Assembly: GCA_036785375.1 (NCBI GenBank)
Contig: JAWMAR010000710.1
Location: 248,001 to 312,000 of the forward strand
Direction of reading: 5' to 3'
Source: Leucoraja ocellata
Taxonomy: Eukaryota
Length of the DNA: 64,000 nucleotides
Within the stretch, counting starts at the first letter, position 1. Every line of letters starts with the position of its first letter. This document shows, in pieces, positions 5,381 to 60,769 of this stretch. The notes under the pieces were generated by a model. It ran no database searches. It was not told where the DNA came from and saw only the letters and a list, made by a program, of their open reading frames with translations. A program made the position numbers and the translations under genes.

Positions 5381-5653
5381 CATTGGGTTGCAATGAATTC
5401 TTACCATATGGAATTAAAACCTTGGGAGTATTGTGAAGAAACAAACCGCAGCGATGATTCCTTTTGTCTGCAACAGCTTTTGGAATGATCAGCTGTAAAG
5501 ATGTCTCTTCCTGCCTTGGCTCCTTGAAAATTTTCTCTCCCACTATTTTGCCATCACCATTGATGCAAACAAGTGTCATTGCCTCAGTGACCTTTGACAC
5601 AGAGCAGGTCAGGGTAACGTTGTCTCCCTCAGTCGCTGCATTAGATTGTTCAG
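5381..5653 (-). CDS. IgSF gene copy 1, D8 exon (C2, paralog of D4)
   Basis: 273-nt open exon, tttcccag| and AATG|gtaagt, with an alternative phase-1 donor at 5404. Encodes EGDNVTLTC..LVC..LQLIIPK..NHRC. Confidence 0.85.
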
Positions 5654-6386
5654 CTGGGAAACAAGAAATTCACTGAGAATTAAAACAACAGCTGGAGTTT
5701 CTGCCCAATGTTTTTTATTAAACCTGATGCCTGTAGAACTAATCCAAAGGATCACTGACAAGCTTTTGCACCAACGTTGAGAACACCAACTTTGAGAATA
5801 AGCACCAATTCCCACAACGCTCCCACTGCCCACAGTGCTGGACACAACACCCTCCATGAATTGTAGGCTTTTTCATATTTCAAGATGACTCCAAAGATTA
5901 ATCAGCAACTTCCGGTGGTAAAGAGGAATATGGACATTATTTGAGGAGCATCTGAGTGAGACGTTCAGAATAGTGACCACTATTGTTGTAACAGGTTACT
6001 CTGCAAGCAGCATATAGAAACATAGAAACATAGAAAATAGGTGCAGGAGGAGGACATTCGGCACTTTGAGCCAGCCCCGCCATTCATCGTGATCATGGCT
6101 GATCGTCCCCTATCAATAACCCTTGCCTGCCTTCTCCCCATATCCCTTGACTCCACTAGACCCTAGAGCTCTATCTAACTCTCTCTTATATCCATCCAGT
6201 GGCTTGGCCTCCACTGCCCTCTGTGGCAGGGAATTCCATAAATTCACAACTCTCTGGGCGAAAAAAAATTTTCTCACCTCAGTCTTAAATGACCTCCCCT
6301 TTATTCTAAGACTGTGGCCCCTGGTTCTGGACTCGCCCCACATTGGGAACATTTTTACTGCATCTAGCTTGTCCAGTCCTTTTTAT

Positions 6387-9300
6387 TATTTTACTTCGGA
6401 GTCACGTGAGTGACTACGTGAAGAAGGTCGTCAGAATGCATGCGCGTCAATTACGCAGACGCATTATGCAACGACTGACTGGCAGGCACGTCTCTCCTGC
6501 CAGCGGTAAGTTTAAACCTGCAGGTAAGTTTTGTATTCCTTACCAGGTTCTGTTTTTTCTTGCAGGAACTTCTTTTTACAGAGGTTTCCTGCTGGATATT
6601 TTCGGGGCGAAGTCCGGACGGGCTGCGGGAAAACCGGTTATGGGCCGTGGGTAGACTCCGGTCCGGACCGCGGAAGTGCGGGTTCGCTACCCCAGTCGCT
6701 GACAGTGTGATCAGCGGCTCCCAGACTGCTGTGGTTCCCATGGAGGGGGTAAACCCAGGAGAAGTCACACCAGTCGCTGACAGTTTGATCAGCGGCTCCC
6801 AGACTGCTGTGGTACCCTTGAAAGGGGGTAAAACCAACAATGCAGGTCAGGCCTTTGGACTCGGGCAAGTCAGGCCATGAGGGTTCCCCTCCTTCAATGG
6901 ATAGTGTCTTCGGACGTCTAACCCACATGGAGTACCTAATGGAGAGTTTGCTCCACAATGATATGCTCCAATGGAGGGAGCTATCATTCCGGGACTCCTC
7001 GGGAGCCCGCGGCAGCAGCCACCTGTTACAGGGCTGCACAATGTCTCCCTCTCTGAGAAGGGGAGCATTCGGGGTCAGTTTTCTGACTCATGATCTATGG
7101 GTAAAATGGAGCATGGATAGCGCCCTCAGGCGTTTATCTCACAAATGTGATGTCCCATCCTGGTATAGGTCCATAGGAGGGGCCATATCAGCGCAGGTAT
7201 CCTCAGGGGCCTGCGGCAGCACCTGTTTCAGGGCTGCCTATGAATCTCCTTCTCTGTGGAGGGGAGTGCAAGTGGTCAGTGTGTAACTGACTTTAAATTC
7301 TAAAGTATGTCATACTGGAGCACATGCGCATGTCTTCTTGGGAATCCTCGCAAACGAAGGTGTTGCTGCCAGAAGAGTCGGTTACCAGCCATTGGCAGAA
7401 TACCCGGAAGGGGCCAGAGTTCCCCTCACGCTACAAGTGCCGGCAGTGAACAGTGCTATCAGGGGTGACATTAGAGTAGCCGCCGAATCTTCTCTTCAGG
7501 TAAGACCTATTCAACAGGTAAGACCTGGATGAGGAAAGAAAAGCTGTCGGACCAATTAAGGTACCAACGACGAGCAAAGCTTCATCGTTTTGGTGACAAC
7601 ACACCCCACACCTCCATCGGCAGTAAGCGGTTCACTGAAGCTGGTGGCAGCGTGAAAGCTGGGCAGTGGCCTTTTAAGCAAAGGCCCAAGTCGGTCTCAG
7701 GAAAAATATGGAATTCACGCACCCTACCAGTCCTACTCTCCAACCAAGGTAACCATGCAGGAAGGCAGGTCTGGCACTTCCAAAACATGGGGTATGTGGA
7801 CCACTTACAAGTTGGTAAAATTTACACTTGTTTTTTGTACAAATGATAATGATAACATGTGATTAGTTTATGTGTTGTATGAAAGCACTGCCCTTGATAA
7901 GGATGGAAGGGGCCCTAGTGGCCTTACAACATACAAATGGTTAAGGCATTGCCATCTACTTGGTGGCATATAACCTTTAAACTGAACAATACTAGGGTTC
8001 CAAGCTGGCTTGGAATTGGGGCCAGAGTTGTTTTTCGAGTCAGCCTCTGTATTATGGCCAGGATTGCCTTTCGAGACAGGCTCGGAAATATAGCCAGAGT
8101 TGTCTTTCGAGGCAGGCTCAGAATTATGGCCATTGTCATTCGAGGCAGGCACGGAATTATGGCAGGCGTGACCTGTTCATTGTGAAAGATGGAGATTGTC
8201 GTTTAACTCGCATGTGCAGTATAAACTTCAGAATAGGAAACTTTGTTACTGACTAACAACTGATTTCAATAGGATCTTTATGGCATGCTTCGATCTCAAA
8301 GATACATTATATTCAGTTCCCATTCACAGGGATCACCAGAGACATTTGAAATTTATCTGGATGAGGCAATGATAACAGTTAAAGCATTGCAAAATGGGCT
8401 AACTTCAGCTCCCAAGTGATTTACTAAAATCTTGTAACTTGGACTGCTCAGAGCTTAAAAACACATGTTATATCTTCTGGATGAAATTTTAACACTGTAT
8501 TTTGCTAAAATTAACTGTTTCAGCCTCAAACTATATTTGAGAAATTGGGGTTCCTCATCCATCCAGTTAAATTTAAGTTGATAACAACTAGACTTATTGA
8601 TTATTGGGATTTACCTTTAACTATTAATTTGCTTGTGATTCCGCCCTGGGGCAAGAGATTGGAATTGATAGAACCTTGTAACAACCTTGTTGTTATAAAA
8701 CAGCTTTCTATTCATCAAGTGTAATTGGCAATATCGTAGCTGTGATTCAGCTGTGTAAGTGGGGCTTTTGCATGATCAGAACTTACATCATGCAAAGTAG
8801 AAACCTCTCAAGTGCCATGTAGGCCATTGTTCACTGACCTATGATATTACCAGCTGAAGCAACCAAAGTCACAATGGTGGACAAACAGTATTCAGCATTG
8901 CTCCAGTAGTTTTGGTCAGTAAATCGTCAGTTATATCACAAACTGCTGCTAGTGCTCAAAGATGGAAAATTACGAATGCCATCTCTAGTTCGGTGACAAA
9001 TGATATTTGCATGAGTTACCAATTCTTCAGTTATTGGTATCAACTACCTATAGACACTGGGTGCATTCTATGGGTTAAAGGGTTATTGTGCCCACTCATA
9101 CACAATGGCTGACAGATATTATGTCCTGCCTAAAGCTCGAAAAAATTAGGTACTCACTTCAACATTCAAATGGAAGGTTTCAGAAAGCGTGGGGACCTTT
9201 TTTAAATGCATTCCAGACTTTGTAAATGCTTGATCATCAAGTACAGTTTAACATTAACAGGCTACCCATTCATTTATCGGGGATTATTGCTGTGACAGGC

Positions 9301-11520
9301 TGATATTTGCAAATGCTCACTGGCAGTGACTGGGGAGGGATTATTTTTGGTATCTCATTTTTCTTTTATTGTCGTTTTCTTGTTATATGTTGGCATAAGT
9401 TGTTTTTTATTTATTCTTTTCGTACACTCTGTCTGTAACAAATGGACAACGTTGAACCTTGTTATGTCTTGAAAACTAAATTAAAAGATTTTGATTAAAA
9501 AAAAGGGTTATTGTGCGAATATGCATAATCTGCATGCTCTACTATGGTGGTGGCATATGTTAGTCACATGGGTGCAATCAAGTCATAGTATCCTGTAATA
9601 ATTTACCTTATCTCATTTGGCACTGGTGTATCATCACGTAAAATCAATGACAACACAGAATGGGTGTTGGATCACAAGGTATTTTATGAAATTATGGCTC
9701 GATGGAACACCAAATATCGATGTGTATTCATCCAGGCTCATTCATCGGTTGCAAAAATATGGGGCATAACAGTGGCGAGAGATACATTCTCGCTACTCGG
9801 AGGAGGAATGTTCTTTTATGTCTTTTCTCCATTTTGCCTCATCAGTCGGGTCTTGCAATAAAGTCAGCAATCCCGCTTCAGGCTTTCATACTGTCTGACT
9901 GGCCTATGCAACCATGGTTCCCGCATTTGTCGGGAATAATAATACAAACTTATATGGTTATTCTAAACATAAAACGTTGCTGGTTCTGCCTGTGACTGGG
10001 GAAACCAGCCTCTGCATGATAAAATCAAATTATTGTCTTGCAGATTCTGAGTAAACTGCTCCTGCGGCTCGGGTTTTCAGACCGATCCATGTAAGTTCTC
10101 ACTGCAGAGTGCAGGGATAGCCCCCAAAAAGCATTACATTTCCTCTTCAGGAGATGGGAAGTGGTTTTTTTTAAATGCTAATGTTACATGTAATACAGCA
10201 CGGACTACTGACGTCGTGGCGTTCATTTGCAAATGGGTATTTGACAATAAATTAAGTTATAGTGCCATTTACTGTGCCAAACGTGCCTTCTCATCATATT
10301 TGCTGCAGCAAGCGGGACCCACACGGTTGGGTCTCACCCACTGATATCCAGTTTATAAAGGATATCTTTAACACAAGTTCTCCCAGGCCCAAGTACACGG
10401 ACGTATGGGATATTGACTTTGTATTAACACTACTTCAACAGGGGGCTCCAGCTATATCCTCATCTTTGGCCCAGCTCTCTAAAGGTGGCTATCCTCATGG
10501 TGCTGGTCTTAGCGCAACGGGTCCAGTCACTACATAAATTGCGACTGGACAGGATGGTTACATCTGCAAATAATACAATATTTTATGTTTATGACTCAGT
10601 TAAGCAGACCAGCCCAGGGGTGTCAGGTCTCAAACCAATTCTCATGGCATACCCTATGGATCTACGGTTATGTGTGGTCACACATTTACTACAATATGTT
10701 AGGTCACCTAGAGCATTAGAGGCTTTGATACTAGCAGTATTTTATAGTTACAATAACCAAATAAGAAGGTATCAATTCAGACCATCTCCAGGTGGTTAAA
10801 ACGGAGTTTTGGCTCATGCAGGAGTAGATTCGAATATTTTCTAATCTCACTCCACCCGGGCTACTACAACATCAGCAGCAAGGGTTATGTACGTTCCGCT
10901 GGACCACATCCTAGCGGCTGCAGGATAGTTTAATAAACGAACTCCAAACATTTTATAGTAACCCATTGCCAGACCAGGGGTATTTCCCAACTCTTTCTTA
11001 GGTTCTATTTTATAATTTCCTCCCAGAAGAGAGGGGTTGCTATAATTATTATTTGTTCATTTCAAAAGCATCAGCATGTTTCAAATCTATGTCATGTCTG
11101 TATGCATTATGAATGTTTCCCTTATCTGTGGTCAACGGTTGCGGTTGTGCTTGTGTCGACTCGTGTACACGGCATGAAATCACAGCTTTAAAATCTTCAC
11201 GTAGTCATTCGCGTGACTCCGAAGTAAAATAGTAAGATTAAATGAGCTTACCAGTTTGAAGTTTGATCTTTATTTTATGCGGAGTTACGATGAGCGATTA
11301 CGTGCCTACCGCTCCCACCCTCATATTATAAAGGTCATCTGGTAGGTTGTAGTTCTCTCCAATCTTACTATGTTCAGTTCAACTACTGTTATCTGTGATT
11401 TCACACCGCTGCTTTGAAAGTTGACGCGCATGCGTTCTGACGGCCTTCTTCGCGTAATCGCTCATTGTCACTCCTCATAAAATATAGATCAAACTGGTAA
11501 GTTCTCACTTCATCTTACTA
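6387..11520 (+). mobile_element. DIRS-type tyrosine-recombinase retrotransposon, full outline but degenerate
   Basis: Left end TATTTTACTTCGGAGTCACG.. is complemented in the internal region 11195-11270, which also complements the right end (..GGTAAG..TCTTACTA). RT remnant DLKD..SVPIH..LKFIW near 8290; YR remnant AQRVQSL..SHSTRA..ILAAAG at 10485-10930. Confidence 0.9.
8011..8170. repeat. Degenerate ~36-bp tandem repeat, 4-5 copies, inside the DIRS element
   Basis: GGAATTATGGCCAGAGTTGTCTTTCGAGGCAGGCTC-like units. Confidence 0.75.
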
Positions 11521-14500
11521 TTATATATGTTTCTATAAGAACCCCCTCATCCTTCTAAACTCCAGTGAGTACAAACCTAGCCTTTTCAATCTTTCCTCAT
11601 ATGACAGTCCCACCATCCCAGGGATCAATCTCGTGAACCTACGCTGCACCGCCTCAATCACAAGGATGTCCTTCCTAAAATTAGGAGACCAAAACTGTAC
11701 ACAATACTCCAGATGTGGTCTCACCAGAGCCCTATACAAATGCAGAAGAACCTCTTTACTCCTATACTGAAATCCTCTTGTTATGAAGGCCTACATTCCA
11801 TTAGCTTTCTTCACTGCCTGCTGTACCCGCCAGCCCACTTTCAGTGACCGGTATACAAGGACGCCCAGGTCTCGCTGCACCTCCCCCTTACCTAACCTAA
11901 CCCCATTGAGATAATAATCTGCCCCCTTGTTTTTGTCACCAAAGTGTATAACCTCACATTTATCTGAATTAAACTGCATCTGCCACACATCTGCCCACTC
12001 ACTCAACCTGTCCAGGTCACCCTGCAACCTCCTAACATCCTCTGCACAGTTCACACTGCCACCCAGCTTTGTGTCATCCACAAACTTGCTGGTGTTGCTC
12101 CTAATTCACTCTTCCAAATCATGAATATATTTGTTAAACAGTTGCGGCCCCATCACCGAGCCTTGCGGCACTCCACGCGCCACTGCCTGCCATTCTGAAA
12201 AGGACCCGTTCACTCCTACTCTTTGCTTCCAGTCTGCCAACCAATTTTCTATCCATGTCAACACCCTACATCCAATACCATATGCTCTAATGTTGGTCTC
12301 CAGTCTCCCGTGCGGGACCTTATCAAAGGCTTTATGAAAGTCTACATACGCTACATCCACTGGCACCCCTTCATCCATTTTACTTGTCACATCCTCAAAA
12401 AATTGCAAAAGATTAGTCAAGCATGATTTCCCTTTCATAAATCCATGGTGACTTGGACTAATCCTTTTACTGCTATCCAAATACCCCATTATTATCTCTT
12501 CAATAATTGACTTTCCCACCACCGAAGGCAGACTAACTGGTCTGTAATTCCCCATTTTCTCTCTTGCTCTTTTCTTGAAAAGTGGGATAACATTAGCTAT
12601 CCTCCAATCCATAGGAACTGATCTTGAATTTATTGAACATTGGAAAATGATCACCAATGCGTCCACTATTTCTAGAGCCACCTCCCTGAGGACCCTGGGA
12701 TGCAGACCATCAGACCACCAGGGGATTTATCATCCTTCAATCCCATTAGCCTACCCAATAATATTTCTCACCTAATTAAAATTTATTTCAGTTCCCCTAC
12801 CCCCTTAGATGCTCTGTCCTCCAGTACATCAGGGAGATTGTTTGTGTCTTCCTTAGTGAAGACAGATCCGAAGTATCTATTCAACTCTTCTGCCATTTCC
12901 TTGTTGCCCATAATAATTTCACCCATGTCTGCCTTCAAGGGACCCACATTTGACTTTGCTACTCTTTTTCCCTTAACATATCTGAAGAAGCTTTTACTGT
13001 CCTTCTTTATATTCTTGGCCAGCTTCTCCTCGTACGTCATCTTTTCAGCCGTATTACCCGTTTAGTTTACTTCTGTTGTCCTATGAAAGTTTCCCAATCC
13101 TCTGGCTTCCGGCTACTCTTCGCTGTGTTATACATCTTTTCTTTTAGTTTTATTCTATTCCTAACTTCTCTTGTCAGCCACGATTGCCTCCTACTCCCCT
13201 TAGAATCTTTCTTCCTTTGTGGAATGAAATGATCCTGATTCTTCCGGAGTATGCCCAGAAATTCCTGCCATTGCTGTTCCACCGTCATTCCTGCTTGGAT
13301 CCCTTTCCAGTCTACCTTGGCCAGCTTCCCTCTCATGCCTTCATAGTCCCCTTTGTTCAACTGCATTACTGACACTTCCGATTTAACCTTCTCCTTCTCA
13401 AATTGCAGATTAAAACTAATCATATTATGATCACTACCTCCAAGCGGTTCCTTTACCTCAAATTCTCTTATCATATCTGGTTCATTGGACAACATTAAAT
13501 CCAGCATTGCCTTTTCTCTGGTCGGCTCCATTACAAGCTGTTCTAAGAATCCATCTCGGAGGCATTCTACAAACTCTCTTTCTTGGGGTCCTGAACCAAC
13601 CTGATTTTCCCAGTCTACCTGCATATTGAAATCCCTCATCACCATAGTGGCATTACCTTTGTTACATGCCAGTTTTAACTCCTTACACCCTACATCAGGG
13701 CTACTATTTGGGGGTCTGTAAATAACACCAATTAGTGTCTTCTTGACTTTACAATTCCTCAACTCAATCCACAGTGACTCTACCTCGTCAGTCCCTATGT
13801 CTTCCCTTGCAAGGGACTGAATTCCAGCCCTCACCAGCAGAGCTACCCCTCCTCCTCTGCCCACCTGCCTGTCCATTCTATAGGATGTATAACCCTGAAT
13901 ATTAAGTTCCCAGGCCCGATCCCCCTGCAGCCACATTTCAGTAATCCCCACAATGTCATGTCTGCCAGCCTCTAACTGAGCCTCAAGCTCATCTACTTTA
14001 CTTCTTATACTTTGCGCATTCATATACAATGCTTTTAATTCCTTACGCATCTCACCTTTCACATCGATCCCTATTACACTTGGCCATACTCTCCTATTCC
14101 TTTGTGAGCTTCCTTTCCCGTTAATTCTAGGGGCATTAACTCTCCCTTTACTCTCTTTCCCTTTAACTCCGTCCTCGACTATCCCATTTGACACCCCACC
14201 CCCCTTATTCAATTTAAAACCAACCATGTACACACAGTGGACCCAAGTTACAGACTTCTTGGATTTATATTGGGATTGGTAGTCTGCTTGGGCAAGCTTC
14301 AAAAATGTTTCTTCACAATTTAAAGGGATTGAGCAGTAAATAAGCAAATGATCAGCACCAAATGTAGGCGGGTTCCCTTTAATTTATTTAATTAGCGGTT
14401 CTCACGTGAGCCTCTCTGCTCCCCCTCAACCCCCCCCCCCCCAAGGAGGGTGGAGTGCAACCTCCACCCTCCTCCAGACCTCATCACTTTCACCCAATCA

Positions 14501-14869
14501 AGAACCCCACACACCCATCACGCAACAGCCTCTCCACCCATTGATCACATGATCGGACAGTATACATCCAACAATCAGTCGACACAACCCACTCCCACCA
14601 ATCAAATAAAAGACAGACGACCAGTCCAAGACACCACCCACTTCCCACCACCACGACTGTTGGCAGCGACCCTCACCCCGAGTCTACTTCCCATTAATGA
14701 CCCAACCCCCAACACATTGTGATGGTGCTTCAAACTCAGGGAATGCACAGGTGGTGGAGTGGCAAAGGGATTTTTTTTTTTAATTGTGAATTAACATGTG
14801 TTTTATCAGGGCAATTTTTTAATGAGTAAAATACAACTATATTTGAGTAGCAGTTCTATTGAAATTATA

Positions 14870-15180
14870 GCCCTGTCCCACAGTGGAAGTTCATTCCAAG
14901 AGCTCTCCCGAGTTTTAAAAAATCAAACTCGTGGTAAGCACGGAGAATGAACATAGCGGGTACGTCGGAGCTCATCTCTTAGTGCTGACGGCAGGTACTC
15001 GGGAAAACTCGCTAATGGCAGGTAGCACGGGAAGACTCATGAAGATTTGTCAACATGATGAAAAATGTCCATGAGAGCCCCGAGTACTGACGAGTGGCCA
15101 TTACCGTATATCTCCGAGTTCGATTGAAGGCAAACTAGGGGGAACTCTTGGAATGAACTTGTACCGTGGGACAGGGATTT
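14870..15180. mobile_element. PIF/Harbinger-like MITE
   Basis: TIRs CCCTGTCCCAC..AAGTTCATTCCAAGAG at both ends; a partial related copy lies at 39230-39400. Confidence 0.7.
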
Positions 15181-15298
15181 AAATCTTTTTTCAGAGTAAA
15201 ATATTTGGAGAAACATGTGCTGAAATCAAAGTCTGCATGAAAGTGAGTACTTTAGCCCAATGACTTTACCATTCATATTCCAATATTCAGTCTCCTAC

Positions 15299-15637
15299 CT
15301 GTAACTGTGATTAGATCAATGGTGACATATTTATTTGATCCTATGTAGCATGTGTAAACTCCAGCATCTGCAAACTGCACGGGGACAATCCGCACACGGA
15401 AATTCGTGCCATTCACATTTCCCTCTGTGGTTTTCAGTCGATTCCCAAAGTAACTCATGTCGACATGGATCGGCTCAGACCTGTGAGAAGAATCTATTTC
15501 CTTCTCTTGATTTTGGACAAGGTGTGATCTCCAAGTCCATTTGGTTTCATTGAGCGCAAGAGAAGCTTCACAAATCAGGTCGAGTTCACTGTGATCTGTG
15601 ACGGAACGATAAACTGTGTACGTCTTGTTATATAAAT
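15299..15637 (-). CDS. IgSF gene copy 1, D7 exon (V-type, paralog of D3)
   Basis: 339-nt open exon, tcttgcag| and ACAG|gtagg. Encodes LDLIC..KWTW..GNRL..NFRVRIVPVQFADAGVYTC. Confidence 0.9.
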
Positions 15638-16437: not shown

Positions 16438-16710
16438 CCTGATCCACTTCAACATTGGTGTCTCCAGTGAGAACAATGGAATCATTTTCCAGCACTTCCC
16501 ATGTGTACAGATTGGGATTTCCTGCTCCAACGTGTTGGATCATCAGATAGATGGTGTTATTCAGATGGATCTGATCAGTGTTGTTTCTCCTGTTCTGCTG
16601 AGATGAGCCTCTTGGTTTCCAGCGAAGACTGACGGTATCTGGGAGTCTGGAGATGGTACAGCTGAGGGTGATGTCACTGCCCATTACTGGCCTCGGTGAG
16701 TCTGCCTCAA
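16438..16710 (-). CDS. IgSF gene copy 1, D6 exon (C2, paralog of D2, F-strand Cys replaced by Trp)
   Basis: 273-nt open exon, tttccacag| and CAGG|gtgagt. Encodes GSDITLSC..SLRW..NLYTW. Confidence 0.88.
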
Positions 16711-17959: not shown

Positions 17960-18298
17960 CTTTGATCACAAATAGTTCCCACTGTCTCAGGATTTTCCCA
18001 CTGGGCTGTGCCTCATTCCAGGTGAAGAGCCCTGCAAGTTCAAAGATGGGTTTCCTGATCCTCAGATCAAGGGTACCCCAGTCCATATGCATACTCTGGG
18101 AAATGCCTGGTATTTGATTGTACTCATCACTCCATTTTACGGCCCACTGCTGATCTTCTCTGTGAAATGTAGCCAATTGCTTTGTGGTTTGTTGCCCTAA
18201 GTGTGGACTCCATTCCAAGTCAATGGGGCCATTTCCAGGACTGTCTGGTCCTTTCAACACATAGTTGCCTTCCTGGTGGAAAAGGTAAATAGTAGTCC
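17960..18298 (-). CDS. IgSF gene copy 1, D5 exon (cysteine-less V-like domain, paralog of D1)
   Basis: 339-nt open exon, ttctggcag| and AAAG|gtatgt. Encodes YVLKGPDSPG..LEWSPH..LDLRIRKP..AGLFTW..ILRQWELFVIK. Confidence 0.85.
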
Positions 18299-18739
18299 CT
18301 GCCAGAAAAGCAAAATATTGTTTTAATATCAGACGATAACTTCTCAGTCTGATCTATGTCGTACTGAATACTGTGAAATTGTTTTCTTTAAAAAGGTTGT
18401 TAGTTATAGTTTATAGAATGATAGAATTTTATAGCAGTGAAACAGACCCTCTAACCCAGCCCAGCGATGTCGACCAGTGCACTCTTCCATATTTGTCCCA
18501 TCTGTTTTGTCAATTGTCCGCAATGCCAATGTGATTCAAGTGTGATTTGCCCAGCAGTTTTAAATACAACTATATTTTACAACAAGCAGTGAAGTACATC
18601 CATAGAACAGCTTACCATTGCATCACTAATGTAACAATACATCACAGTTAAGATAGACGTTTTATAATTTGATAAGCACATGAGATTGGCATCAGAGGAG
18701 AGCAGAAATGGTACACAGTTACCACAAGTAATGATGTTT

Positions 18740-19015
18740 GGTTTAGTTTTGTTTAGTTAGTTTCAAGATGCAGTGTGGAAACACGTCCTTTGTCCCACCG
18801 GGTGCATGATGGCCACTGATCACCCCACACAATAGTTCTATCCTACACACAAGAGATAATTTACAGAGACCGCTTAACCTACAATCCTGCAAATCTTTGC
18901 AATGTGGGAGGAAACCGGAGGATCTGGAGAAAAGCCATACGATCACAGGGAGAATGTACTAACACCATACAGACAGCACCCTTGGTCAGGATTGAACCCA
19001 GGTCTCTGGCACTGT
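18740..19015 (-). mobile_element. tRNA-derived V-SINE (HE1-like)
   Basis: B-box GGTTCAATCC, V-domain TCCGGTTTTCCTCCCACA, (CTAAA)n tail. Confidence 0.8.
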
Positions 19016-19299
19016 TCACCAGCCCTTGTGAATGTGTGAATTCAGATTATTGAACATATGGTTTGGGGGAAGATTTTGAGAGGAGCTGAGATACATGATG
19101 GTGTGGGGAGATTGTATGGACATTTCACAGTCTCCCAGTCTAATCAAGTCTTCTATGAGAAAAGTGGAGGGAGGGCTGGGTGACCCAACAATGACCAATG
19201 GAGATGGGGCAGAGGAGGGCAGGTTTATTTGCAAACAGCCAGCAGCCATGTCCAATCATCGATGGCAACAGGAGACAGAAGGCGATGACAGAGAGTTGT

Positions 19300-19960
19300 T
19301 TTTACACCTGGATGCCTGTTACTAACGGTGACGAATGGTGTTCCACAAGGATTGGTCCTGGGACCTTGTTGAATCTAATGTACACAAATGTCTTGCAGTG
19401 GATAGCAGTGGATTTGGCAGGCACGATTAGTGAAGTTGTTGATAGTGTGGACAGTGGTCTTATTCTGCAGAGAGATGTCAATGTGTTGGTGAAATGTGCT
19501 GGGAAATGAAAGATGGATCTTAATCCAGAATTTGTGAGGTGATGTGTCCTAGGGGCACAAATGGGGCTAGGACATACACCATGAATTACAAGGTCTGACA
19601 AATTATTGAGAAACAGAGGGACATTGGAGTACGTCCATTGATCCTTGAACGTGGACACACAAATAGATAATGTGGTTGGAAAGGCACACGGGATAGTGTG
19701 TTCATCAGTCAGGACATAGATCACAGAAGTAGGGAAGTTATGCGGCAGATGTGTAAATTTTGGTCAGACCTCAGCTGGAGTACTGTATGCAGTCTGGTCA
19801 CCAAATGACAGGAAGGATGTGGTAGCACTGGAGAAGGTATAGAGGAGATTGACAGGATGCTACTTGAGAAGAGATTAGATAAGCAAAATCTATTTGCCAT
19901 GGAGTTGAGGTCTCTGACGGGACATTATTGACATGTATAACTGGTGAACATGGATGAAAT
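19300..19960 (+). mobile_element. Old CR1 RT fragment
   Basis: Degenerate VTxGVPQG and LQRD motifs plus an RPQLEYC-like stretch. Confidence 0.6.
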
Positions 19961-20473
19961 GGGTAAGCAGCCCATTCCAATGCTGCATGATTCTATGATT
20001 GCACAGTTTATAGTACCACAGGTGGCAGGACTGCTTATGTAAACAGCGTTCTCCATCCAGATATCCTGAACACTCCAGGGTCCAGCTGTGCTCCGAGTGA
20101 GGAGGATCAGTGAGATGGTCTCTTTGTGTTCAACATCGGTCAGTATGGGCATGATGGACTTTGGACAGTGATTCTGGCAGTGGAATTGGTTCAGGGTCAA
20201 ATGGAAAGGCTCTGTTTTGCTGACAGGACCCAATGCTTGTCCCAGCTCTGTCACTATCCCACTTTCCCATCAGTGACACATAGAAAGGTGAAGTTTCAAT
20301 ATTAACCCAGGGGCACGGAGTTATCCCATGGTCCATATTCCCAGGGACTACACCACAGCAAATCATCCCACATAGGCTGCAAAGGAGGAGTGAATACTGG
20401 CAAATAGTGCAATAAGTGACATCAAAATGTGATCCTGATTCTAAGTATGAAGAGCAAATCCTGAGTCACTTAC

Positions 20474-20734
20474 CACTGGTCTCCTGATAGTATGGGACTA
20501 AAAGCCGGGGCAGGTCTTGATGAAACAAACCACATCTCCAATTCCCTCTGCCCCTCTCAACTTTCTGAATAACCAGACTCAGTGATTTCTCTTCCACGGT
20601 CAGTGTCTTTTCTCCAACACATTTGTCATCGCCATTGATCCAAACCAGTCTCATTGACTCAGTGACGTGAGACACAGAGCAGGTCAGGGTAACGTTGTCT
20701 CCCTCAGTCACTGCATCGGACGGTTCAGCTGTGA
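20474..20734 (-). CDS. IgSF gene copy 1, D4 exon (short C2 domain with F-strand WxC motif)
   Basis: 261-nt open exon, tttccacag| and AGTG|gtaagt. Encodes EGDNVTLTC..LVW..LSLVIQKV..GNWRC. Confidence 0.9.
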
Positions 20735-20812
20735 CTGTGGAAACAAGCAGGTTGTTTATATTTTAAACAATTAGTTCATCAGTGAAAACACTGGCAGCAT
20801 TCTGTCTCCTAC

Positions 20813-21157
20813 CTTTCACTGTGATTAGATCAATGGTGATATATAGATATGTTCCTGCTGAACATTTGTAAACTCCAGCATCTTCAAACAAAACTGGGAC
20901 AATCCGCACACTAAAATCCTCGCCTTTGAAGTGTTTCACTGAGGTCATCAGTCGATTCTTAAAAGCTGTATTGGCGACATTGATGGGTTGAGAGAATGTT
21001 GCTGATGCTATTACTTTGTCCTCGTCATTTAGGCGACTAGATGTCCAGGTCCACACGCCAGAAGCAATGTTGAAAACAGGAAGAAAATAGCAAACCAGCT
21101 GGACTTCACTGTGATCTGTGCTGGTGCGGTAAAGTGTGTGACGTTTGCTGTATATGT
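20813..21157 (-). CDS. IgSF gene copy 1, D3 exon (V-type Ig domain)
   Basis: 345-nt open exon, gctatag| and AAAG|gtagg. Encodes VQLVC..WTW..NRL..DFSVRIVPVLFEDAGVYKC. Confidence 0.9.
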
Positions 21158-21349
21158 CTATAGCAGAGAGACAAAAGAATAGAACTCCTTTCAGCATCAC
21201 AGTTACTGAGGCACAGGGGTAATCAGGTAAAAATTCCCAACCAGGTTTTTATTAAAATTCTTTGTGTTTTGTTCATCTGATAAGTTTCAAAATGTGACTT
21301 CTTGCATGAATTCCACACCAAAACACTTCAGGTTTTTTTCTAAATATAA

Positions 21350-21990
21350 AACAGATGCCCACTACAATACAGGCACCAGGCCACCATCTCCCAGAATGTC
21401 ACTGATTTCATCATCTCTGGCGATCACCCATCCACAGTCTCCAACCTAATCGTCCACCAGCCCCTATCTATCTCCTTCTGAAACACCACAAACAGGGCAG
21501 CCCTGGCAGACCCATTGGTTCTGCCTACCCCTGCCCCACATAAATCATTTCCTCCTCTTGTCCAGTCGCGGAGTTCTGAACTGGAGCAACAGCAACTCAT
21601 ATTCTGCTGGAATAGCTTGCAACCCAATGATACAAACATTGAATTATCCAGTGTTTGGTTACTAACATGTAGGCATCCCCCTCCCCCCACATGTCTTCTA
21701 TCGTTATCATATCACACTGGTTCACAATTTTATGTCTGGCCTTTGTCCGACCATTTGTTAATCAACAACCCCCCCCCCCCCCCCCATCACCTATGTCCCC
21801 CTATCACTTGCAGGCCTTGTCACACCCCCAACCCTCTTCCAGCTTTCTACCCCTTTTACAATCAGTCTGAAGAAAGGTCTCGACCCAAAACGTGGGCCAG
21901 GCAGCATCCTGAGATATTGCCCGATTCACCATTATTCAGCACTTTGTCTCTTTTTTGTAAATCAGTATCTGCAGTTCTTCATGTCTACAA
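21350..21990 (+). mobile_element. Penelope fragment with terminal repeat
   Basis: LEQQQLIF..LQP..NIE C-terminus and CTGAAGA..GACCC motif; the paralog at 56650-57540 keeps more RT sequence. Confidence 0.6.
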
Positions 21991-22812
21991 TATATTGGAT
22001 GGTGACCCTTCCACGTTACACCCCGGCAGAGTTTGCAACACTCGTGTCCGTGTTAATGTCTACACAGCAGAGACAGTTCTACAGGGAGCTTGGGGGAGAG
22101 ATGAAGAGCACAGGGTGACCAGGTTACAGAACAAGATGGTGTGAACACATTAACCTGGAATCACAGGAGGACTGACTTCTTCATGGGGTGGGTTTTACAC
22201 AATTATGAGCTGGTCTGGCATCTTAGTGACTCCCCCGTGGGAATGCTGAACGTGTCCTGACCCTCTCGCTCACCCTCATACAGAACCAGCATGTTGCAAA
22301 CATCAGCCCTACCCCACTCTCTTTCACATCAGCTGCCTGCTACCTCTCTTTGCATCCAATCCCAACCTTCACTTCATTCCCATTATTCCCACCATCCCTC
22401 TCCCATTCACACCCATTGATTCCCAACCCTTCCCTCTCCCTGGGTCCTGCTCCTAGCTGAATGCTGATCTGAAGCCCGAGTCTGGAGCAGCTGGAATCAT
22501 TTCAATCTGAAGAAACGTTCTGACCCAAAACGTCACTTATTAATGTTCTCCAGTAATGCCCCACTGAGTTACTCTTACTAAACATATTAGAATTCATTCT
22601 TTCAATATTGTGTATCTGTCAAACAGAGATGAACAGGCAGCTGCTCCACAGGGAGACTTTCTGGAAGCTTCTCCCTGAACACTGAAGCATTTTGTACAAA
22701 TTAGATTTCGGACACAAACTACAATTCTTTACGGGGTGCACACATGATATTATAATGAGCACCAATGGTACAAGTGCATGTTCAATATCTAGTATGAGGT
22801 ATTGACACTCAC

Positions 22813-23082
22813 CCTCAATAACATTAAAATTGGCATTACTTGTATGAACGATTTTTCCATTTTCCTGCACTTCACACACATACAGCTTCCCATCCTCCAC
22901 TGTAACATGTCGAACCATCAGATAGACCGTGTTATTCAGGCGGATCTGATCAGTGTTGCTCGTGTTCTGCTGGGATGAGTCCATTGGTCTCCAGTGAAGA
23001 CTGACTGTATCTGACAGTCTGGAGATGGTGCAGCTGAGTGTGACGTCACTGCCCAGCAGAGGGCTCTGTGGAGTTGCTTCAA
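22813..23082 (-). CDS. IgSF gene copy 1, D2 exon (C2-type Ig domain)
   Basis: 270-nt open exon, ttttcacag| and GAGG|gtgagt. Encodes GSDVTLSC..SLHW..DGKLYVC. Confidence 0.9.
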
Positions 23083-23499
23083 CTGTGAAAAACAGATCAA
23101 TGAGATTCAGAGTGGGTAGTGGTGTGGACAGTCCAATGACTGGGCTCAATCTCACCTCAACTGATAACGTAGACATAAAGACTGAAGAACAACTTCTTTC
23201 CCAGTGATTTCCCAGTGATTTCAGACTCTTGACATCACCTTCACTCGCACTTCCTGGTGGTGCTGTCACATGTTCTTGCAGTTATTGTACCTTAGTTTTA
23301 TTTTGCGTTCATTCAGATAGCTCTGAAAACTCTACACCGTTCTGCTGTGTTGCATTTATTGTGTTTATAATTTTATCCATCATTAACTTTTACTCAATGA
23401 GCTTCATGTGAACAAAAATGTATTTTCATCCTGGTGTTTATGACAATAAACTCATCTGAACCAGTATCGGTCTACACAGTTACATTGTTGCTGTTCAAT

Positions 23500-23800
23500 A
23501 CATTTATTCAAATATTAAAGTAATATTTAGAAGACAATAAAACACAACACAACCCACCACCATAATACAAGCCAAACAATAAACTATTATACAACTATCT
23601 TACAGTCCTTGTCAAGGATGCATTCAACCCCCTGCGGAGCCCAATGGTCCCGGAATTCCCCCAGAGTTCATAGTCCCTCTCCAAAACCACCCGGGCATGG
23701 ACGTAATCCCGGAAAAGCGGCAGGCAGCTGGCTCGGGCAGAGCCCTCATCCACCTGGTGCCATGACTCACAGGTGGCCAACTTGGCCAGGCCTATGAGAG
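23500..23800 (-). mobile_element. Tx1/L1-clade LINE 3' end
   Basis: LFRDYVHARVVLER ORF2 C-terminus; the paralog at 60088-60357 keeps a poly(A) tail. Confidence 0.6.
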
Positions 23801-23859
23801 AAGGTAAAAACTGGCTTTGCGGGGCTGGGAAACTATATGGTTGGAGGCTGTGGAAGGCA

Positions 23860-25335
23860 CATAGCCAGAAGTGATGAAATTAGTGATGGTGTTAGCGGTG
23901 CTGGTCCACACCCTCAAAAACTTCTCCTTTGACTCATTTCACTTCCTCCATGTTCCAGGCGTAGCAATGGGCACCCGCATTGGCCCCAGCTATGACTCCC
24001 TATTGGTTCGGTATGTTGAACAATCCCTGTATCAGGCATACACTGGCCATATCCCCAAACTCTATCTTCATTACATTGATGCTACATCGTTGCTAACTCA
24101 TGCACCCATGCAGAACTCATGGAACATCCACTTCACCACCAATTTTCATCCTGCTTTCACATTTTCCTGGACCATCTCTAACACCTCCCTTCCCTTTCTT
24201 AATATCTCAGTCTCCATCACAAGAAATACACTATTGACTGACATCAATTACAAACCCACTGACTCCCACAACTATCTCAACTACACTTTTACCCACCCTG
24301 CTTCCTGCAAAGACTCTATCCCCTACTTTCAATTCCTCTTTTTACGCCGCATCTGCACTCTAGATGAGATGTTCCATACCATAACATATGAGATGTCCTC
24401 ATTCTTTAGGCAACGGGGTTCCCCTCCTCCATCATTCATGAGGCCCTCACTCTTGTCTCCTCGGTACTCCACAGCTCGGCCCTTGCGTCCTCTCCACCCT
24501 AGTCCCAACAGAGACAGAGTCCCCCTAGTCCCATCAGCACTTGTACACAACATATAATCGTCCTCAATTTTGCCACCACCAACGGGATCCCACCACTAGC
24601 CACATTTCCCCATCTCCAACCCTTCCCACCTTCCGCAGAGACCGTTCCCTCTGCAACTCCCTGGTTAACTCATTCCTTCCCACCCAAACCACCCACTCCC
24701 CAGATACCTTCCTCTGCAACCGCCGAAGATGCAACACCTGTCACTATACCTCCTCCCTTGGCTCTGTCCAGGGACCCCAAAAGCTATTTCAGGTGAGGCA
24801 GAGGTTTTCTTGCACCTCCTCCAACCTAATCTACTGTATTCATTGTTCAAGATTTGGACTCTTTTACATCGGCGAGACCAAAGGCAGACTGGTCGATTGT
24901 TTCACGGAACACCATCGTTCAGCCCACGTGAACCAACATGATCTCCCTGTTGCTGGACACTTCAATTGACCTACCCATTCCTACACAGACCTTTCTGTCC
25001 TCGTTCTCCTTCATTGTCAGAGTGAGGCTAAATGCAAATTGGAGGAACAGCATCTCATATTTCACTGGGGCAGCTTACAGCCCTGTGGTATGAATATTGA
25101 TTTCTCTCACTTCAGGTAGCCCCTGCATTCCCTCGCTCTCCATCCCTCCCCCACCCTATTCACACTAGCTTCTCATTTTCATGCTACAAACAGCCTGTTT
25201 CTTTTATCATCATCACTTTTGTGTATATCTTTCATTCATTGTTCTTTATCTCTCCACATCACTGTCTATATCTCTCGTTTCCCTTATTGCTAACTAGTCT
25301 GAAGAAGAAGGATCTCAACCCGAAACGTCACTTGT
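23860..25335 (+). mobile_element. Penelope-like element (RT C-half + GIY-YIG endonuclease + terminal repeat)
   Basis: GVAMGT..GPSY, LPFL, YKPTDSHNYL, NLIYCIHC..YIGETKGRL..EH..VAGHFN. Confidence 0.88.
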
Positions 25336-25738
25336 TGTGTCTGTTGCCAGTGCTGTGGCTTGTTGGTCACTGTTTAAATAAGGACATTTCTTTTTGTAGC
25401 AAGGGAAGATTGTAATCTAAGTTGTATTGTATTGCATTTATTTTTGTACGGTTTATTAGAATAATAATAATAATACTATACAATATATTATTTCTATTGA
25501 AGTCATTATATGGCTACTAATGATATTATAATTATTTCTATTGTTGTCATTATAAGGCTACAAATTATATTATAATTATTGTATCAGATATTTATAAGTT
25601 AATCTTATGAGTTAGTCTTTTGGTTCCTACTGTTGTATTGGGGAATTAATTTGTGGAGCGTATAAAAGTCCCCTGGTGGACATGTTGAGTTACCTGCTAC
25701 TGCGATTGTCTGTGATCAAAGAAAAGTGAAGAAACTAA

Positions 25739-26422
25739 AGGGCCTGTCGCACTTACGTGTCCTTGGCACGCAAATTACGCGACCTCATGGTCACGTTGAG
25801 CCGTGACAGTCCCACGAGCGTCGCGCACGATTTAATGCATACACACTACTGTCTGGAGTGCGTGACGTCATTTGAAGATGGACACAAAGTAACTCTGTGG
25901 GAATGGCAGCAACTCTGGAGAGAAGGAATGGGTGACGTTTCATGTCGAGGCTCTTCTTCAATCTGAAAAGAAGGCTCTTGACCCGAAACGTCACCCATTG
26001 CTTCTCTCCAGAGATGCTGCCGGTCCCGCTGAGTTACTCCTGCATTTTGTGTCTACCTTCAATTTTCTTGGCCCCGCTCTGGGAGTAGAAGTGGGGGCGG
26101 AACCGGACTGCAACGTCCGTGAGCCCCAGGGCGAGCTCGGCGATCGTTTGCCTGCTTCTGCTGCTGTTACCGGTGAGAAATTGCATTGCGCCAGCGTCTT
26201 GGGCCGGTCCCACTTTGGTCGTCAGTTATGCGACAGGCCGTTGGTGCGCAAAGATTTTGCTCGCTACAGAAATTTCGGGGCCCCGCGCGATGTCACGCAC
26301 AACTACATACCCCTCCTCTCAGTGGGACCGGCCCCACGTGGCCATAGGATGCCCGTGCGCCTCAACACGACCACGAGGTCGCGTAATTTGCGTGACAATG
26401 TTATGTAAGGGGGACAGGCCCT
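25739..26422. mobile_element. PIF/Harbinger MITE with TAA TSD, containing a palindromic Penelope-repeat segment (~25880-26055)
   Basis: TIR AGGGCCTGTC..ACTTAC plus ~65-bp imperfect inverted arms, TAA on both sides, empty site CTAACTGTAGCCC in the paralog near 62680. Confidence 0.85.
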
Positions 26423-26544
26423 TAACTGTAGCCCAATTATTACCAACAGCCCAGAGTGACTGGAGTATTAACATCAAAACATAGATTTACATGTGACTTT
26501 ACATACAGAGAAACACATTATTGATCCATGTCTCGCCCACTCAC

Positions 26545-26880
26545 CTTTGATCCCAAATATTTCATATTGTTTCAGGATTTGCTTCCTCGGTTGTGTTTTA
26601 GACAAAGTGAAGAATCCCGCCCATTTAAATGCGTTGTTTTTTATTGTCAGATTACAAGTACTGGCATCCACATCCACCTGGTTCTTGTGTCTCTCTCTCC
26701 AGCCATCACCCCACTGGATGGTCCAATGCTTGTCCGCTCTGCTGCCAGTTAACACTGTCTGGATTCCATGCCCTGAGTGTGGTTTCCATTCCCAAACAAC
26801 AACGTCACTGCCAGGATTGTCCGGTCCTTTTAACGTAATGTTGCCTCCATTATCCAAGAAATAAACCAGATTTCTGATTT
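26545..26880 (-). CDS. IgSF gene copy 1, D1 exon: atypical V-like domain lacking the canonical B/F cysteines
   Basis: 336-nt open exon, acceptor ttccaacag| and donor AAAG|gtgagt, phase 1/1. Encodes GNITLKGPD..VVWEWKP..NLTIK..WAGFFT. Paralogous to D5. Confidence 0.85.
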
Positions 26881-28374
26881 CTGTTGGAAAGAGGAGCAAT
26901 GAAGGAATTTAGGGGGGGGGGGGGGAGTGTTGGGGGGAGGGAGGTTGTGGTGGGGGGGGTTACCGGGGACGGTCCAGTGACGGTTATGCAGCGCTTGCGG
27001 TTTGGCAGTGCTTGTGGTTGCGGGTCACGGGTCCGATCCTGACTGCAAACGAGACGCGGTTCTCCGGATGAGAGACGGTCCAGTCTCCCCCCCCCCCCCC
27101 CGGCCTGGTCTCCCCCTCGCCCAGTCTTTATTATTCTGAAATAAAGTTTATTTTTGAATATTAAAAAATGTGAGGTTTGAAGGGTGCAAGGATTCTGCAT
27201 TTCCCCATATCACATTCAGGACCTGATGCAAAATTCAGAGAAATGGTCAAGGCTGCATGAAGAGCTGTCTTGCCATTTAACCACAATGATTCGTCTATTC
27301 TGAGCTCTGGGCTGTTTCTCTTCCTGATTTTTTTATCTCAACTAAATTTCACAATGTGTAAATAAATGTCACAATTGGGAAGGACAAATAAAACATCAAA
27401 CCATCCCAAAACCTATTGAAACATACAAAAGAGAACCAGGGGTTCTCCCGCCCGGTCTCCCCCCCCACCCATCCACCCCCCCCCCCCGGTCTCTCCCCCA
27501 CCCCGATCTCTCGAGGGGCGCTGAGCTGATTTGTGTAAACAGGGCTTTATTTCCTCTGTGGTTTCGATAGTACTATAGTAAGGTAATTCCGTTTTAAAAC
27601 TATTAATTTGTTGCATTTATTTTTCCTTTGTAAAAAGCTGCGATATTTTTCTCGTTTTTATTGGTTCAAGCCTCCATGAGCGAGATCGCCAAGATAAATG
27701 ATATGCATTTTTTTCTTTCTTGAGGGTGGGGGGGGAGTGAAATTAAATGTTTGATTTCTATAACTTTCAATAGACTTTAAGGAGTTCTTTGGACTGATTT
27801 AAATTGCTGTAGCTACAGCAAGAGCTACAAGTACAGCTTTTCGTCCCATATTTTTTAACCCCCTCTCTGCTAAGAAAATCTTCAAAGCTTCGACTTTCCA
27901 TGACATAAAATCTTCCAGCTTCATATCTTGGAACTTTGAATCAACCATGACAAAAGACAAAAAATCGGACCAAAAGTATACTCATTGTATCTATAACGCT
28001 GAGATCTATTTACTGTTATAGCTTACTACCTTTGACAAATCCCATGATTCCTTGCGTTATTCAGAATACAGAACTCACTTATTGTTTGAGGCAGCACGAC
28101 GGAACTGTGCAGGAGCGTGAAGTGAAGATATTGCGGGTGATTCTTGGGCAGCGACCTGTGCAACAAGCTCACAGGTGGGAATATCTCCCTGAGGGGAGGC
28201 AGTTCATGCGAGGGGCTCAGGAATGGAGCTCCAAAAAGGATGGCATGGATTTGTGAGCAGCAGCACATTCAGGGATGTGGAGAGGAAAGTGAGATTGACA
28301 AAAGGGTGCGGGTTTACACGGAAAATGATAAAGTACAGCAAGGTGATTGTGACCGGTGAAGTGAAAGTACTTAC

Positions 28375-28462
28375 TCTGTGTGGAAACAGATCGAAGCAGG
28401 AAAACAAAGACACCGAACATCAAACCATCAGGAAAACCGTTGCAGAGAAACTTCGGCCTCAT
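28375..28462 (-). CDS. IgSF gene copy 1, leader (signal peptide) exon: MRPKFLCNGFPDGLMFGVFVFLLRSVSTQ
   Basis: ATG at 28462, hydrophobic core FGVFVFLL, phase-1 donor CAGA|gtaagt at 28374, upstream acceptor tttctcacag| at 28475. The donor is conserved in the paralog near 63975. Confidence 0.75.
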
Positions 28463-45110: not shown

Positions 45111-45149
45111 TACACACCACTACTCACTCTGAATCACATTGTGGACCAG

Positions 45150-60680: not shown

Positions 60681-60769
60681 GCGGATGGCCAGCTTGGCCT
60701 GGTCCTGGAGAGAAGGTAAAAACGGGCTATGCGGTGCAGGGAAACGATTGAGATGCAGGTTGTGGAAGG

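Follow-up and report, generated by a model that had tools for sequence, protein, structure and literature searches.

A window of 64,000 nucleotides, free of N, was analyzed from Leucoraja ocellata (assembly GCA_036785375.1, contig JAWMAR010000710.1, positions 248,001 to 312,000), and it probably carries a single minus-strand gene of eleven coding exons, 28462..774, that specifies a leader, eight immunoglobulin (Ig)-like domains of one exon each, a transmembrane segment and a tail, and that belongs to a paired-receptor family. The ectodomain would have the order (Cys-less V-like)-C2-V-C2, used two times, the product of one tandem duplication of a four-exon cassette before sharks and rays diverged. 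Within its family the gene is predicted to be the rarer, activating-type form. In what follows the domains are numbered D1 to D8 and assigned to four types, T1 to T4, that occur in this order in a first module (D1-D4) and again in a second (D5-D8); the coordinates are collected in Table 1.

The leader and the eight stop-free, phase-1 Ig exons with GT-AG ends proposed in a first-pass annotation of this DNA are confirmed on the minus strand with identical lengths. Each of the Ig exons has a polypyrimidine-AG acceptor and a GT donor and is in phase 1 at both ends; for D1, D2 and D8 an alternative acceptor-donor pair that would give an exon of equal length exists, with poorer sites. The lengths of the leader and D1-D8 exons add up to 841 codons plus 1 nt, in keeping with the 841-residue model of the first-pass annotation, from which the membrane anchor was missing, two downstream exons having been overlooked; with these included the complete frame comes to 912 codons, again by arithmetic. 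The donor of D8 is a consensus gtaagt, and beyond it the frame remains open for nine more codons before a stop is reached (5354-5380). Translation of exon 2004..1901 gives a hydrophobic stretch with a Lys mid-way, followed by basic residues, that is 59% identical to residues 435-473 of a four-domain sawshark protein (P0010), and exon 884..774, which has a good acceptor, is 54.5% identical to the tail of the same protein. It is probable, in our judgement, that the product is anchored in the membrane by way of the Lys exon. Two further transmembrane candidates were dropped, 4687..4631 with its weak phase-1 acceptor and 3810..3754 with no phase-1 acceptor, neither having a match in a homologue. 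In all of the searches described here and below the queries were individual exon translations or entire database proteins.

Pairwise BLASTP of the separate exon translations groups the domains as D1/D5 (35.5% identity over 110 aa, E 2e-23), D2/D6 (59.1%, E 1e-33), D3/D7 (46.9%, E 8e-34) and D4/D8 (58.5%, E 2e-30), with all cross-type pairs at E 5e-4 or worse, so that the four paralogous pairs proposed earlier are borne out at 35-59% identity. Pfam recognizes six of the eight domains, D2, D4, D6 and D8 as short Ig domains (from Ig_3 at 2.6e-7 for D2 to Ig_2 at 1.2e-3 for D8) and D3 and D7 as V-set (1.9e-5 and 1.7e-6, respectively); D1 and D5 match no Pfam family at E<=1, and across the eight exon translations and 16 family members the scan returned generic Ig families only. 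D3 alone and the pair profiles A1, A2 and A3 likewise find only generic Ig matches among solved structures (PDB), and the D1/D5 profile finds four matches there, all of them non-Ig, at E 0.17 or worse. D3 and D7 carry just the two canonical Cys residues, with weak matches to pIgR and MXRA8.

Family-wide domain alignments (77-78 sequences per type) were compared by hhalign in order to relate the four types to one another. T1, the type of D1 and D5, aligns with T3, the type of D3 and D7, over 83 columns at 94.1% probability (E 1.2e-7), both Cys positions being replaced in T1, and T2 aligns with T4 at 93.4% (E 2.5e-7), all cross-type comparisons remaining at or below 36%. The label V-like for D1 and D5 comes solely from this profile-profile comparison with the D3/D7 type. 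From the two links we read the unit as V-like, C2, V, C2, a cassette that appears to bear an older V-C2 doubling and then to have been doubled again. The V-C2-V-C2 order claimed previously is thereby supported, by hhalign as well as Pfam, with the reservation that D1 and D5 have no Cys pair and no Pfam Ig match at E<=1. Less survives of the claim that the C2 domains bear a WxC motif in the F strand: D4 does (WRC), and the corresponding residues are HRC in D8, YVC in D2 and YTW in D6.

When the D1/D5 profile was run against 1.84 billion proteins just 41 matches were obtained at E<=1e-3, which argues that this domain is specific to a small family. Three word-index searches, together with the members of clusters, led to a family set of ∼130 proteins, and 105 of the 120 surveyed have at least three family domains. 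The T1-T2-T3-T4 architecture occurs once in 38 of these 105 and twice in 30, these having exactly eight domains and coming from 8 batoid and 10 shark species. Sharks, rays and chimaeras all have members of the family, and relatives are present in sturgeon, paddlefish, bichir and eel. The proteins are named "uncharacterized", "hypothetical" or automatically (obscurin-like, CEACAM5-like, VCAM1-like) in their sources; the eight-domain relative from nurse shark (GenBank AGQ17915.1, P0089), for example, is called 'obscurin-like protein' and one Heptranchias isoform is "CEACAM5-like" at NCBI. Larger models of 11, 12, 15 and 20 domains are found as well (P0055, 1404 aa; P0059; P0058; P0001, 1710 aa; and P0018 from Anguilla, 2139 aa), reflecting either further multiplication of modules or tandem genes fused in annotation. 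Four cypriniform proteins (P0027, P0031, P0033 and P0039) match the Cys-less T1 profile weakly, at E 5e-9 to 2e-4, and in P0033 and P0039 the T1-like domain is repeated (four times and twice, respectively) with none of the three other types present; one of the four bears the label "titin homolog".

The closest relative is P0079 (851 aa), which RefSeq lists for Leucoraja erinacea as "uncharacterized protein LOC129701496" and in which the eight domains come in the same order. Identities to the window for D1 through D8 are 97.3, 95.4, 90.4, 98.8, 95.5, 96.7, 94.6 and 91.1%, and given these values and the near-identical leader the two appear to represent one locus, seen in a close relative or in a different haplotype, or else a very recent copy. 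They have in common the leader, the domain order, the Cys-to-Trp change of D6 and the Trp losses of D8, and differ in a cluster of residues in the D3 loop that follows the B-strand Cys (21060-21090, compared with residues 257-272 of P0079), where most of the 11 D3 differences are located, the domain being almost unchanged elsewhere; the cluster could be allelic hypervariability, gene conversion or diversifying selection. At a greater distance, D5 is 68.9% identical to D5 of Mobula P0002, compared with 37% for D1.

The C-termini of the family are of two main kinds. A Lys anchor (motif [GAS]YL[LFV][VI]KL) with a short tail is found in 9 of the 105 proteins, and at least one motif like the immunoreceptor tyrosine-based inhibitory motif (ITIM) in 50, with at least two in 40 of these, IHYGSI and VIYAQI being the commonest; 38 of the 50 also have YxN. 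Not one of the 105 combines a Lys anchor with an ITIM-like motif. The remaining 46 have neither C-terminus and are mostly truncated models or bony-fish proteins with other tails, and it should be added that the strict ITIM pattern misses some members, such as P0002 with VIYVQI. Since the two features divide the family and never coincide, we read the window gene as the activating-type half of a paired-receptor family, in which an uncharged anchor with a long ITIM-like tail, often with YxN, and a Lys anchor with a short, motif-free tail would be mounted on common ectodomains. By analogy, the membrane Lys would pair with an acidic residue of an adaptor with an ITAM (a tyrosine-based activation motif of immunoreceptors). 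DAP12 or FcR gamma pair in this manner with KIR2DS, TREM and SIRP-beta. On this analogy the balance tips slightly towards an activating paired-receptor function for the gene.

The age of the cassette duplication was addressed with a tree of 71 natural four-domain modules from database proteins (411 columns, IQ-TREE quick search, support by the Shimodaira-Hasegawa-like approximate likelihood ratio test, SH-aLRT, only), in which P0079 stands in place of the window gene. One clade (SH-aLRT 95) unites all 25 second modules of eight-domain proteins with the second and third modules of a sevengill model of 12 domains; it holds both sharks and rays, and within it the batoids, including P0079, are grouped with a value of 100. 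Its sister group (SH-aLRT 91) comprises all 25 first modules and 8 four-domain proteins of elasmobranchs, the two groups being joined at 99, and outside of both lie a four-domain subfamily of chimaera plus elasmobranch proteins, then the four-domain sevengill protein P0054 and then the bony-fish proteins. In trees of single domains, which do include the window, D5 and D7 fall among the domains of second modules, D1 and D3 among those of first modules; the window domain adjoins its P0079 counterpart in every one of them, the T2 and T4 trees being poorly resolved. A discrete character points the same way. At the position of the F-strand Cys of T2, 24 of 25 second modules have Trp and all 25 first modules have Cys; over all first-module T2 domains of the protein set (n=97) there are 95 Cys, 1 Phe and 1 Trp, the sole Trp belonging to P0102, a leaderless model whose start lies within T1. 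Together, the second-module clade and this Trp/Cys character argue that the modules were duplicated once, before the divergence of sharks and rays, and the second-round internal duplication suggested by the first-pass annotation, giving two copies of a four-exon cassette, is supported by the module tree. The doubled cassette would have been retained for several hundred million years. Among the proteins examined the second module is not found as a stand-alone gene, and given a single old duplication the several four-domain genes nested among the first modules would be secondary shortenings or isoforms.

Compared pairwise over the 25 eight-domain proteins, T1 has a mean identity of 50.2% in the first module vs 71.1% in the second, the corresponding values (first/second) being 67.4/76.6 for T2, 56.7/62.2 for T3 and 67.1/64.6 for T4. 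The variability of the first T1 set against conservation of the second fits a ligand-binding tip on a conserved stalk, in which the fast-evolving D1 would bind ligand and the conserved second module, D5-D8, would act as the stalk. All 25 first modules, and 24 of the 25 second modules, have the Trp of the T4 WxC motif. As a separate observation, second-module T2 domains (including D6, 16438-16710) retain the B-strand Cys in 25 of 25 cases though its F-strand partner is Trp in 24 of 25, leaving a conserved unpaired Cys.

Of the listed runs that contain this stretch none is recorded as RNA. Four raw-read RNA runs of the same species label (X9, X12, X13 and X16) were mapped on 15290..21170, covering D3 to D7, with 54-79 reads mapped per run. 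The D3-D4 joint, with 78 nt skipped and GT..AG on the gene strand, is present in X9 (3 reads), X13 (2) and X16 (6) and in no read of X12, and a joint that skips 800 nt and lies within 2 nt of the predicted D6-D7 intron is present in X9 only (3 reads), the run whose coverage extends from D3 through D7. Close relatives of the gene are expressed and spliced at the homologous D3-D4 and approximate D6-D7 sites. Of the eight junctions for which the first-pass annotation had recommended an RNA check these two were recovered, and D4-D5, singled out there, is without a joint. A repeat core of ∼70 nt in the D4-D5 intron (18943-19015) takes most of the reads, at a depth of 3-6 in all four runs; loose read ends of low agreement flank it on both sides, as in an expressed dispersed repeat family, and it has no Rfam match.

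Several of the results weigh against one membrane-anchored, activating-type gene of eight Ig domains and are best considered along with the explanations that they would favor. In none of the 4 RNA runs does a read joint for D4-D5 or D5-D6 attain the threshold of three reads, the depth over D5 does not exceed 2 and is confined to X9, and X13 and X16 cover D3-D4 with zero reads on D5-D7. This is what might be expected of two neighboring four-domain genes, D1-D4 and D5-D8, and four-domain members exist in the family (38 of the 105 proteins); nevertheless, we regard two genes as very improbable. Leader, anchor and in-frame stop are all absent between D4 and D5: the intron (2.2 kb) contains no hydrophobic stretch with a Kyte-Doolittle mean of at least 1.9 over 19 aa and just two weak leader-like ATG open reading frames, neither with a phase-1 GT donor, in a scan that recovers the real leader. 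The end of D4 and the start of D5 are both in phase 1 with consensus sites, and no intact model has second-module domains directly after a leader. The first-pass annotation would have taken a missing D4-D5 joint and a separate leader for D5 as signs of two genes; the joint was not seen, yet no such leader exists in the intron. Because of this lack of any leader- or anchor-like exon, the eight-domain models in 18 species and a second-module clade that spans sharks and rays, a single eight-Ig gene is very likely. The RNA reads bear on a further explanation, namely that the gene is a pseudogene or decaying copy within a birth-and-death cluster, its sequence still open but its expression or function lost. 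Nearly all of the mapped reads are 95-99% alike to the window, none at 99% or above supporting this copy over D3-D7, and their variants, in 15 codons, imply 12 amino-acid changes of which 2 agree with P0079. The reads therefore stem from another family member or allele and are not evidence for expression of this copy. In addition, D8 of the window and of P0079 is without the C-strand Trp and the WxC Trp that the other 24 second-module T4 domains keep, a loss of two family-invariant residues that could mean decay, and two clearly decayed copies lie in the same window. Against a pseudogene, which we consider improbable, stand eleven exons that are all open with canonical splice sites, the presence of both D8 changes in little skate P0079, and differences between the window and P0079 at 1-10% of residues per domain with zero stop or frameshift, a pattern that fits continued constraint.

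The anchor is the remaining point of contention. P0079 ends by read-through after D8, in a peptide without an anchor, and the window has the same open read-through and stop as well as the anchor and tail exons downstream. Among the 30 eight-domain models 20 are ITIM-type and 9 have neither kind of tail, leaving only one, from the sawfish Pristis (P0074), with a Lys anchor, and the interval from D8 to the anchor lies outside the RNA-mapped region. It could be argued from these observations that the gene makes a secreted eight-Ig protein, reading past the D8 donor to the stop nine codons on, with the anchor and tail exons as relics or parts of a minor isoform. We consider this unlikely, since the D8 donor is of consensus sequence, the splice acceptor and donor of the anchor exon are good, its frame is open and GYLL[VI]KL is kept, both downstream exons retain the similarity to the sawshark protein described above, relic exons would not be expected to remain open, and many of the models without an anchor are visibly truncated. 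An anchor exon further downstream is probably missing from the RefSeq models ending after D8, and a secreted isoform through intron retention after D8 is possible beside the membrane-anchored form that we favor. The adaptor pairing, ligand and cell type of that form are all inferred.

The window also contains remnants of other family members (Table 1), and with these two decayed copies and many paralogues per species the multigene family anticipated in the first-pass annotation is supported. No non-family cellular gene was recognized within the window. Several LINE (long interspersed nuclear element) fragments, all of them minus-strand, carry domains of reverse transcriptase and endonuclease and are found at 46000-49700 and 11536-14383, and a 38-nt tandem repeat of 8.3 copies with 96% matches occupies 42557-42870 in a G+C-rich stretch that on the minus strand has frames open over 110-173 codons, encoding a repeated peptide.

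Table 1. Exons of the predicted gene and other elements of the window
Feature	Position	Strand	Description
Leader exon	28375..28462	minus	ATG at 28462; 88 nt; phase-1 donor gtaagt after 28375; 28/29 residues as in the P0079 leader
D1 exon (T1)	26545..26880	minus	336 nt; V-like by profile comparison, without Cys pair, membrane-distal; most variable domain type of the family
D2 exon (T2)	22813..23082	minus	270 nt; short C2-like, Cys pair; Pfam Ig_3 2.6e-7
D3 exon (T3)	20813..21157	minus	345 nt; V-set, Cys pair; Pfam V-set 1.9e-5; RNA joint 20734/20813 in 3/4 runs
D4 exon (T4)	20474..20734	minus	261 nt; short C2-like; F strand WRC
D5 exon (T1, second module)	17960..18298	minus	339 nt; clusters with second-module T1 domains
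D6 exon (T2, second module)	16438..16710	minus	273 nt; Trp in place of the F-strand Cys
D7 exon (T3, second module)	15299..15637	minus	339 nt; in second-module T3 clade, SH-aLRT 99; approximate D6-D7 RNA joint in run X9
D8 exon (T4, second module)	5381..5653	minus	273 nt; C-strand Trp to Cys, WxC Trp to His, both also in P0079
Transmembrane exon (predicted)	1901..2004	minus	phase-1 acceptor, phase-0 gtgaga donor; Lys within hydrophobic stretch (GYLLIKL)
Last coding exon (predicted)	774..884	minus	short cytoplasmic tail, stop codon inside; without tyrosine signalling motif
Decayed upstream family copy	56257..63176	minus	D1-like in three frames 63176..62798; intact D2-like 58779..58513, 90% to D2
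Decayed upstream copy, remainder	56447..56257	minus	D3-like fragments; D4-D8 absent
Inverted partial copy	41290..45752	plus	D1-like fragment 41290..41510; D2-like exon 45456..45752, 85% to D2
LINE insertion	11536..14383	minus	in the 9.6-kb D7-D8 intron; Exo_endo_phos_2 2.5e-7, RVT_1 1e-18

The gene model itself is already known, RefSeq LOC129701496 being a near-copy, and with this and eight-domain models in 18 species the earlier statement that there is no described counterpart does not hold for databases; in the main texts of the open-access literature we found no paper on the family, and the main text of Venkatesh et al. 2014 (PMC3964593) makes no mention of the "obscurin-like" nurse shark record. 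What appears to be new is the paired-receptor reading of the family, the downstream Lys anchor exon and a date for the duplication of the modules. No living lineage with immunity based on antibodies and T cells is older than sharks and rays, and to our knowledge their germline-encoded receptor families, activating and inhibitory, that correspond to KIR, LILR and NITR have barely been described. Here is a large family, conserved across elasmobranchs, with ITIM and charged-anchor halves, an unusual modular build and motifs in common with CD4, LAG-3 and G6F-like. Naming it would provide comparative immunologists with a candidate natural killer (NK)- or myeloid-type receptor system for cartilaginous fish, an outgroup against which the origin of CD4 and LAG-3 could be tested, and a clean case of a long-fixed duplication of an exon cassette.

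How the family relates to known receptors is best considered by starting with the paired families of the Ig superfamily (IgSF), KIR, LILR, SIRP, CD300 and TREM, and NITR and MDIR of fish, which are a kind and not a clade. In such receptors the charged anchor associates with an ITAM adaptor, and SHP phosphatases are recruited by the ITIMs. The skate family resembles them in combining similar ectodomains with either an ITIM tail or a charged anchor and short tail, in its multigene clusters with decayed copies and, here, in a variable membrane-distal domain. It differs in the arrangement (Cys-less V)-C2-V-C2 in one, two, three or more modules, whereas KIR and LILR are C2-only and CD300, TREM and NITR are single-V, and its adaptor pairing is putative. 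The modular domain immune-type receptors of skate (MDIR) have Ig domains akin to CD300, TREM and pIgR, according to the portion of the source that describes them (PMC3031540). None of the named matches of the present family is called MDIR, and the two are set side by side by description only.

CEACAM and PSG offer a likeness of a different kind, with a disulfide-free N-terminal V-like domain that is followed by repeated C2 pairs, phase-1 exons and both ITIM and activating forms, but in the skate family a disulfide-bearing V-set domain alternates with C2. The per-domain alignments with CEA are weak (i-E 0.02-0.03), and in a language-model Atlas the skate module has CEACAM and PSG as its nearest clusters, at 0.92. 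As for CD2/SLAM, with a disulfide-free N-terminal V domain that precedes a C2, D1 and D5 are without a Cys pair, Receptor_2B4 is matched weakly by D2 (E 0.069) and by 2 of 16 family members (best 0.0025), and there is no CD2 or SLAM chain in the best 60 PDB matches of the family profile.

The comparison with CD4 and LAG-3 was the starting point of the first-pass annotation. In the excerpts of Takizawa et al. 2023 (PMC10768021) at hand, the CD4/LAG-3 family is defined by V-C2-V-C2, WxC in both C2 domains, an intron within D1 and tail motifs; the intron, in a rule stated for Osteichthyes, is in phase 1 in CD4 and phase 2 in LAG-3, the tail motifs are Cx(C/H) and (F/Y)xxL(D/E), respectively, and sharks possess their own single CD4 and LAG-3 genes. 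The window gene shares V-C2-V-C2 derived from V-C2 doubling, with the cassette present twice, a V-to-C2 transition without a linker, and WxC in the F strand of the fourth-type domain. A family profile (A5, 22 proteins) run against 177,635 PDB sequences matches pIgR (3.1e-12), CEA (1.9e-11), CD4 (5.1e-11), NCAM1 (5.2e-11) and LAG-3 (1.3e-10), aligning with LAG-3 from the D1 E-F motif through D2, WxC included, and in a second stretch on D3-D4, and with D1 of CD4 too. The LAG-3-like motifs pointed out earlier in D3 are thus recovered, in an alignment whose scores do not separate LAG-3 from other IgSF matches. These features notwithstanding, true membership in the CD4/LAG-3 lineage, with a role as a class II co-receptor of the major histocompatibility complex (MHC) or as a checkpoint, is largely refuted and the least probable of all the explanations considered. 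T2 reads YxC or YxW, Trp being absent two positions ahead of the Cys, a single exon of 336 nt encodes D1 without a break (the D1-intron rule, in the excerpts, concerns bony vertebrates only), neither tail motif is present in the window tail or the family tails, the first V has no disulfide, the cassette is doubled again, and a multigene family takes the place of the single genes that sharks, by the same source, already have. The eight exon translations and 16 family members match no CD4-specific Pfam family, and pIgR, CEA and NCAM score equally.

G6F-like has four Ig-like domains, a single anchor, a YxN tail and, in fish, an ITAM split over two exons, as set out in the relevant part of PMC3528668. 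The family is similar in its four Ig-like domains with an anchor and in the YxN of 38/50 ITIM-type relatives and of the sturgeon and bichir tails, and different in that the window tail has neither YxN nor ITAM and the ITIM-type relatives no ITAM. In the Atlas the two clusters nearest to sturgeon P0024 are both g6f-like ("putative g6f-like" and "g6f-like isoform X9", 0.97, with 211 and 206 of 256 features), followed by Contactin-2 at 0.97, CD4 and LAG-3 at 0.96 and LY6G6F at 0.95; the first module of skate lies near unnamed, PSG, CEACAM and CD22 clusters at 0.92-0.94, scores in a range that serves for leads only, with no g6f-like cluster among them. None of the 41 matches of the D1/D5 profile is a teleost protein that has the size of G6F-like and is matched in full, and searches for named G6F-like relatives with P0024 and with profile A4 (best 8000 candidates by common words scored) returned none, only proteins of sturgeon, paddlefish and bichir and three cyprinid "CD22-like".

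The kinship with CD4, LAG-3 and G6F-like claimed at the outset thus stands to the extent that these are among the nearest known proteins, by PDB profile and sturgeon Atlas neighbors, even as the features that define membership fail; plausible kinship, with the paired-receptor families as a working analogy, is a reasonable hypothesis. A bolder reading, which we put forward tentatively and think rather less likely than not to be correct, is of an ancient, unnamed V-C2-V-C2 paired-receptor family of jawed vertebrates, the multigene, innate-type sister of the CD4/LAG-3/G6F lineage; with the same reserve, this would place it in sharks, rays, chimaeras, sturgeon, paddlefish, bichir and eel, undetected in tetrapods and most teleosts. 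If true, the architecture of the MHC class II co-receptor was drawn from a pool of activating and inhibitory receptors, one that elasmobranchs would have elaborated by multiplying four-domain modules to 8, 12 or more domains behind a fast-evolving tip.

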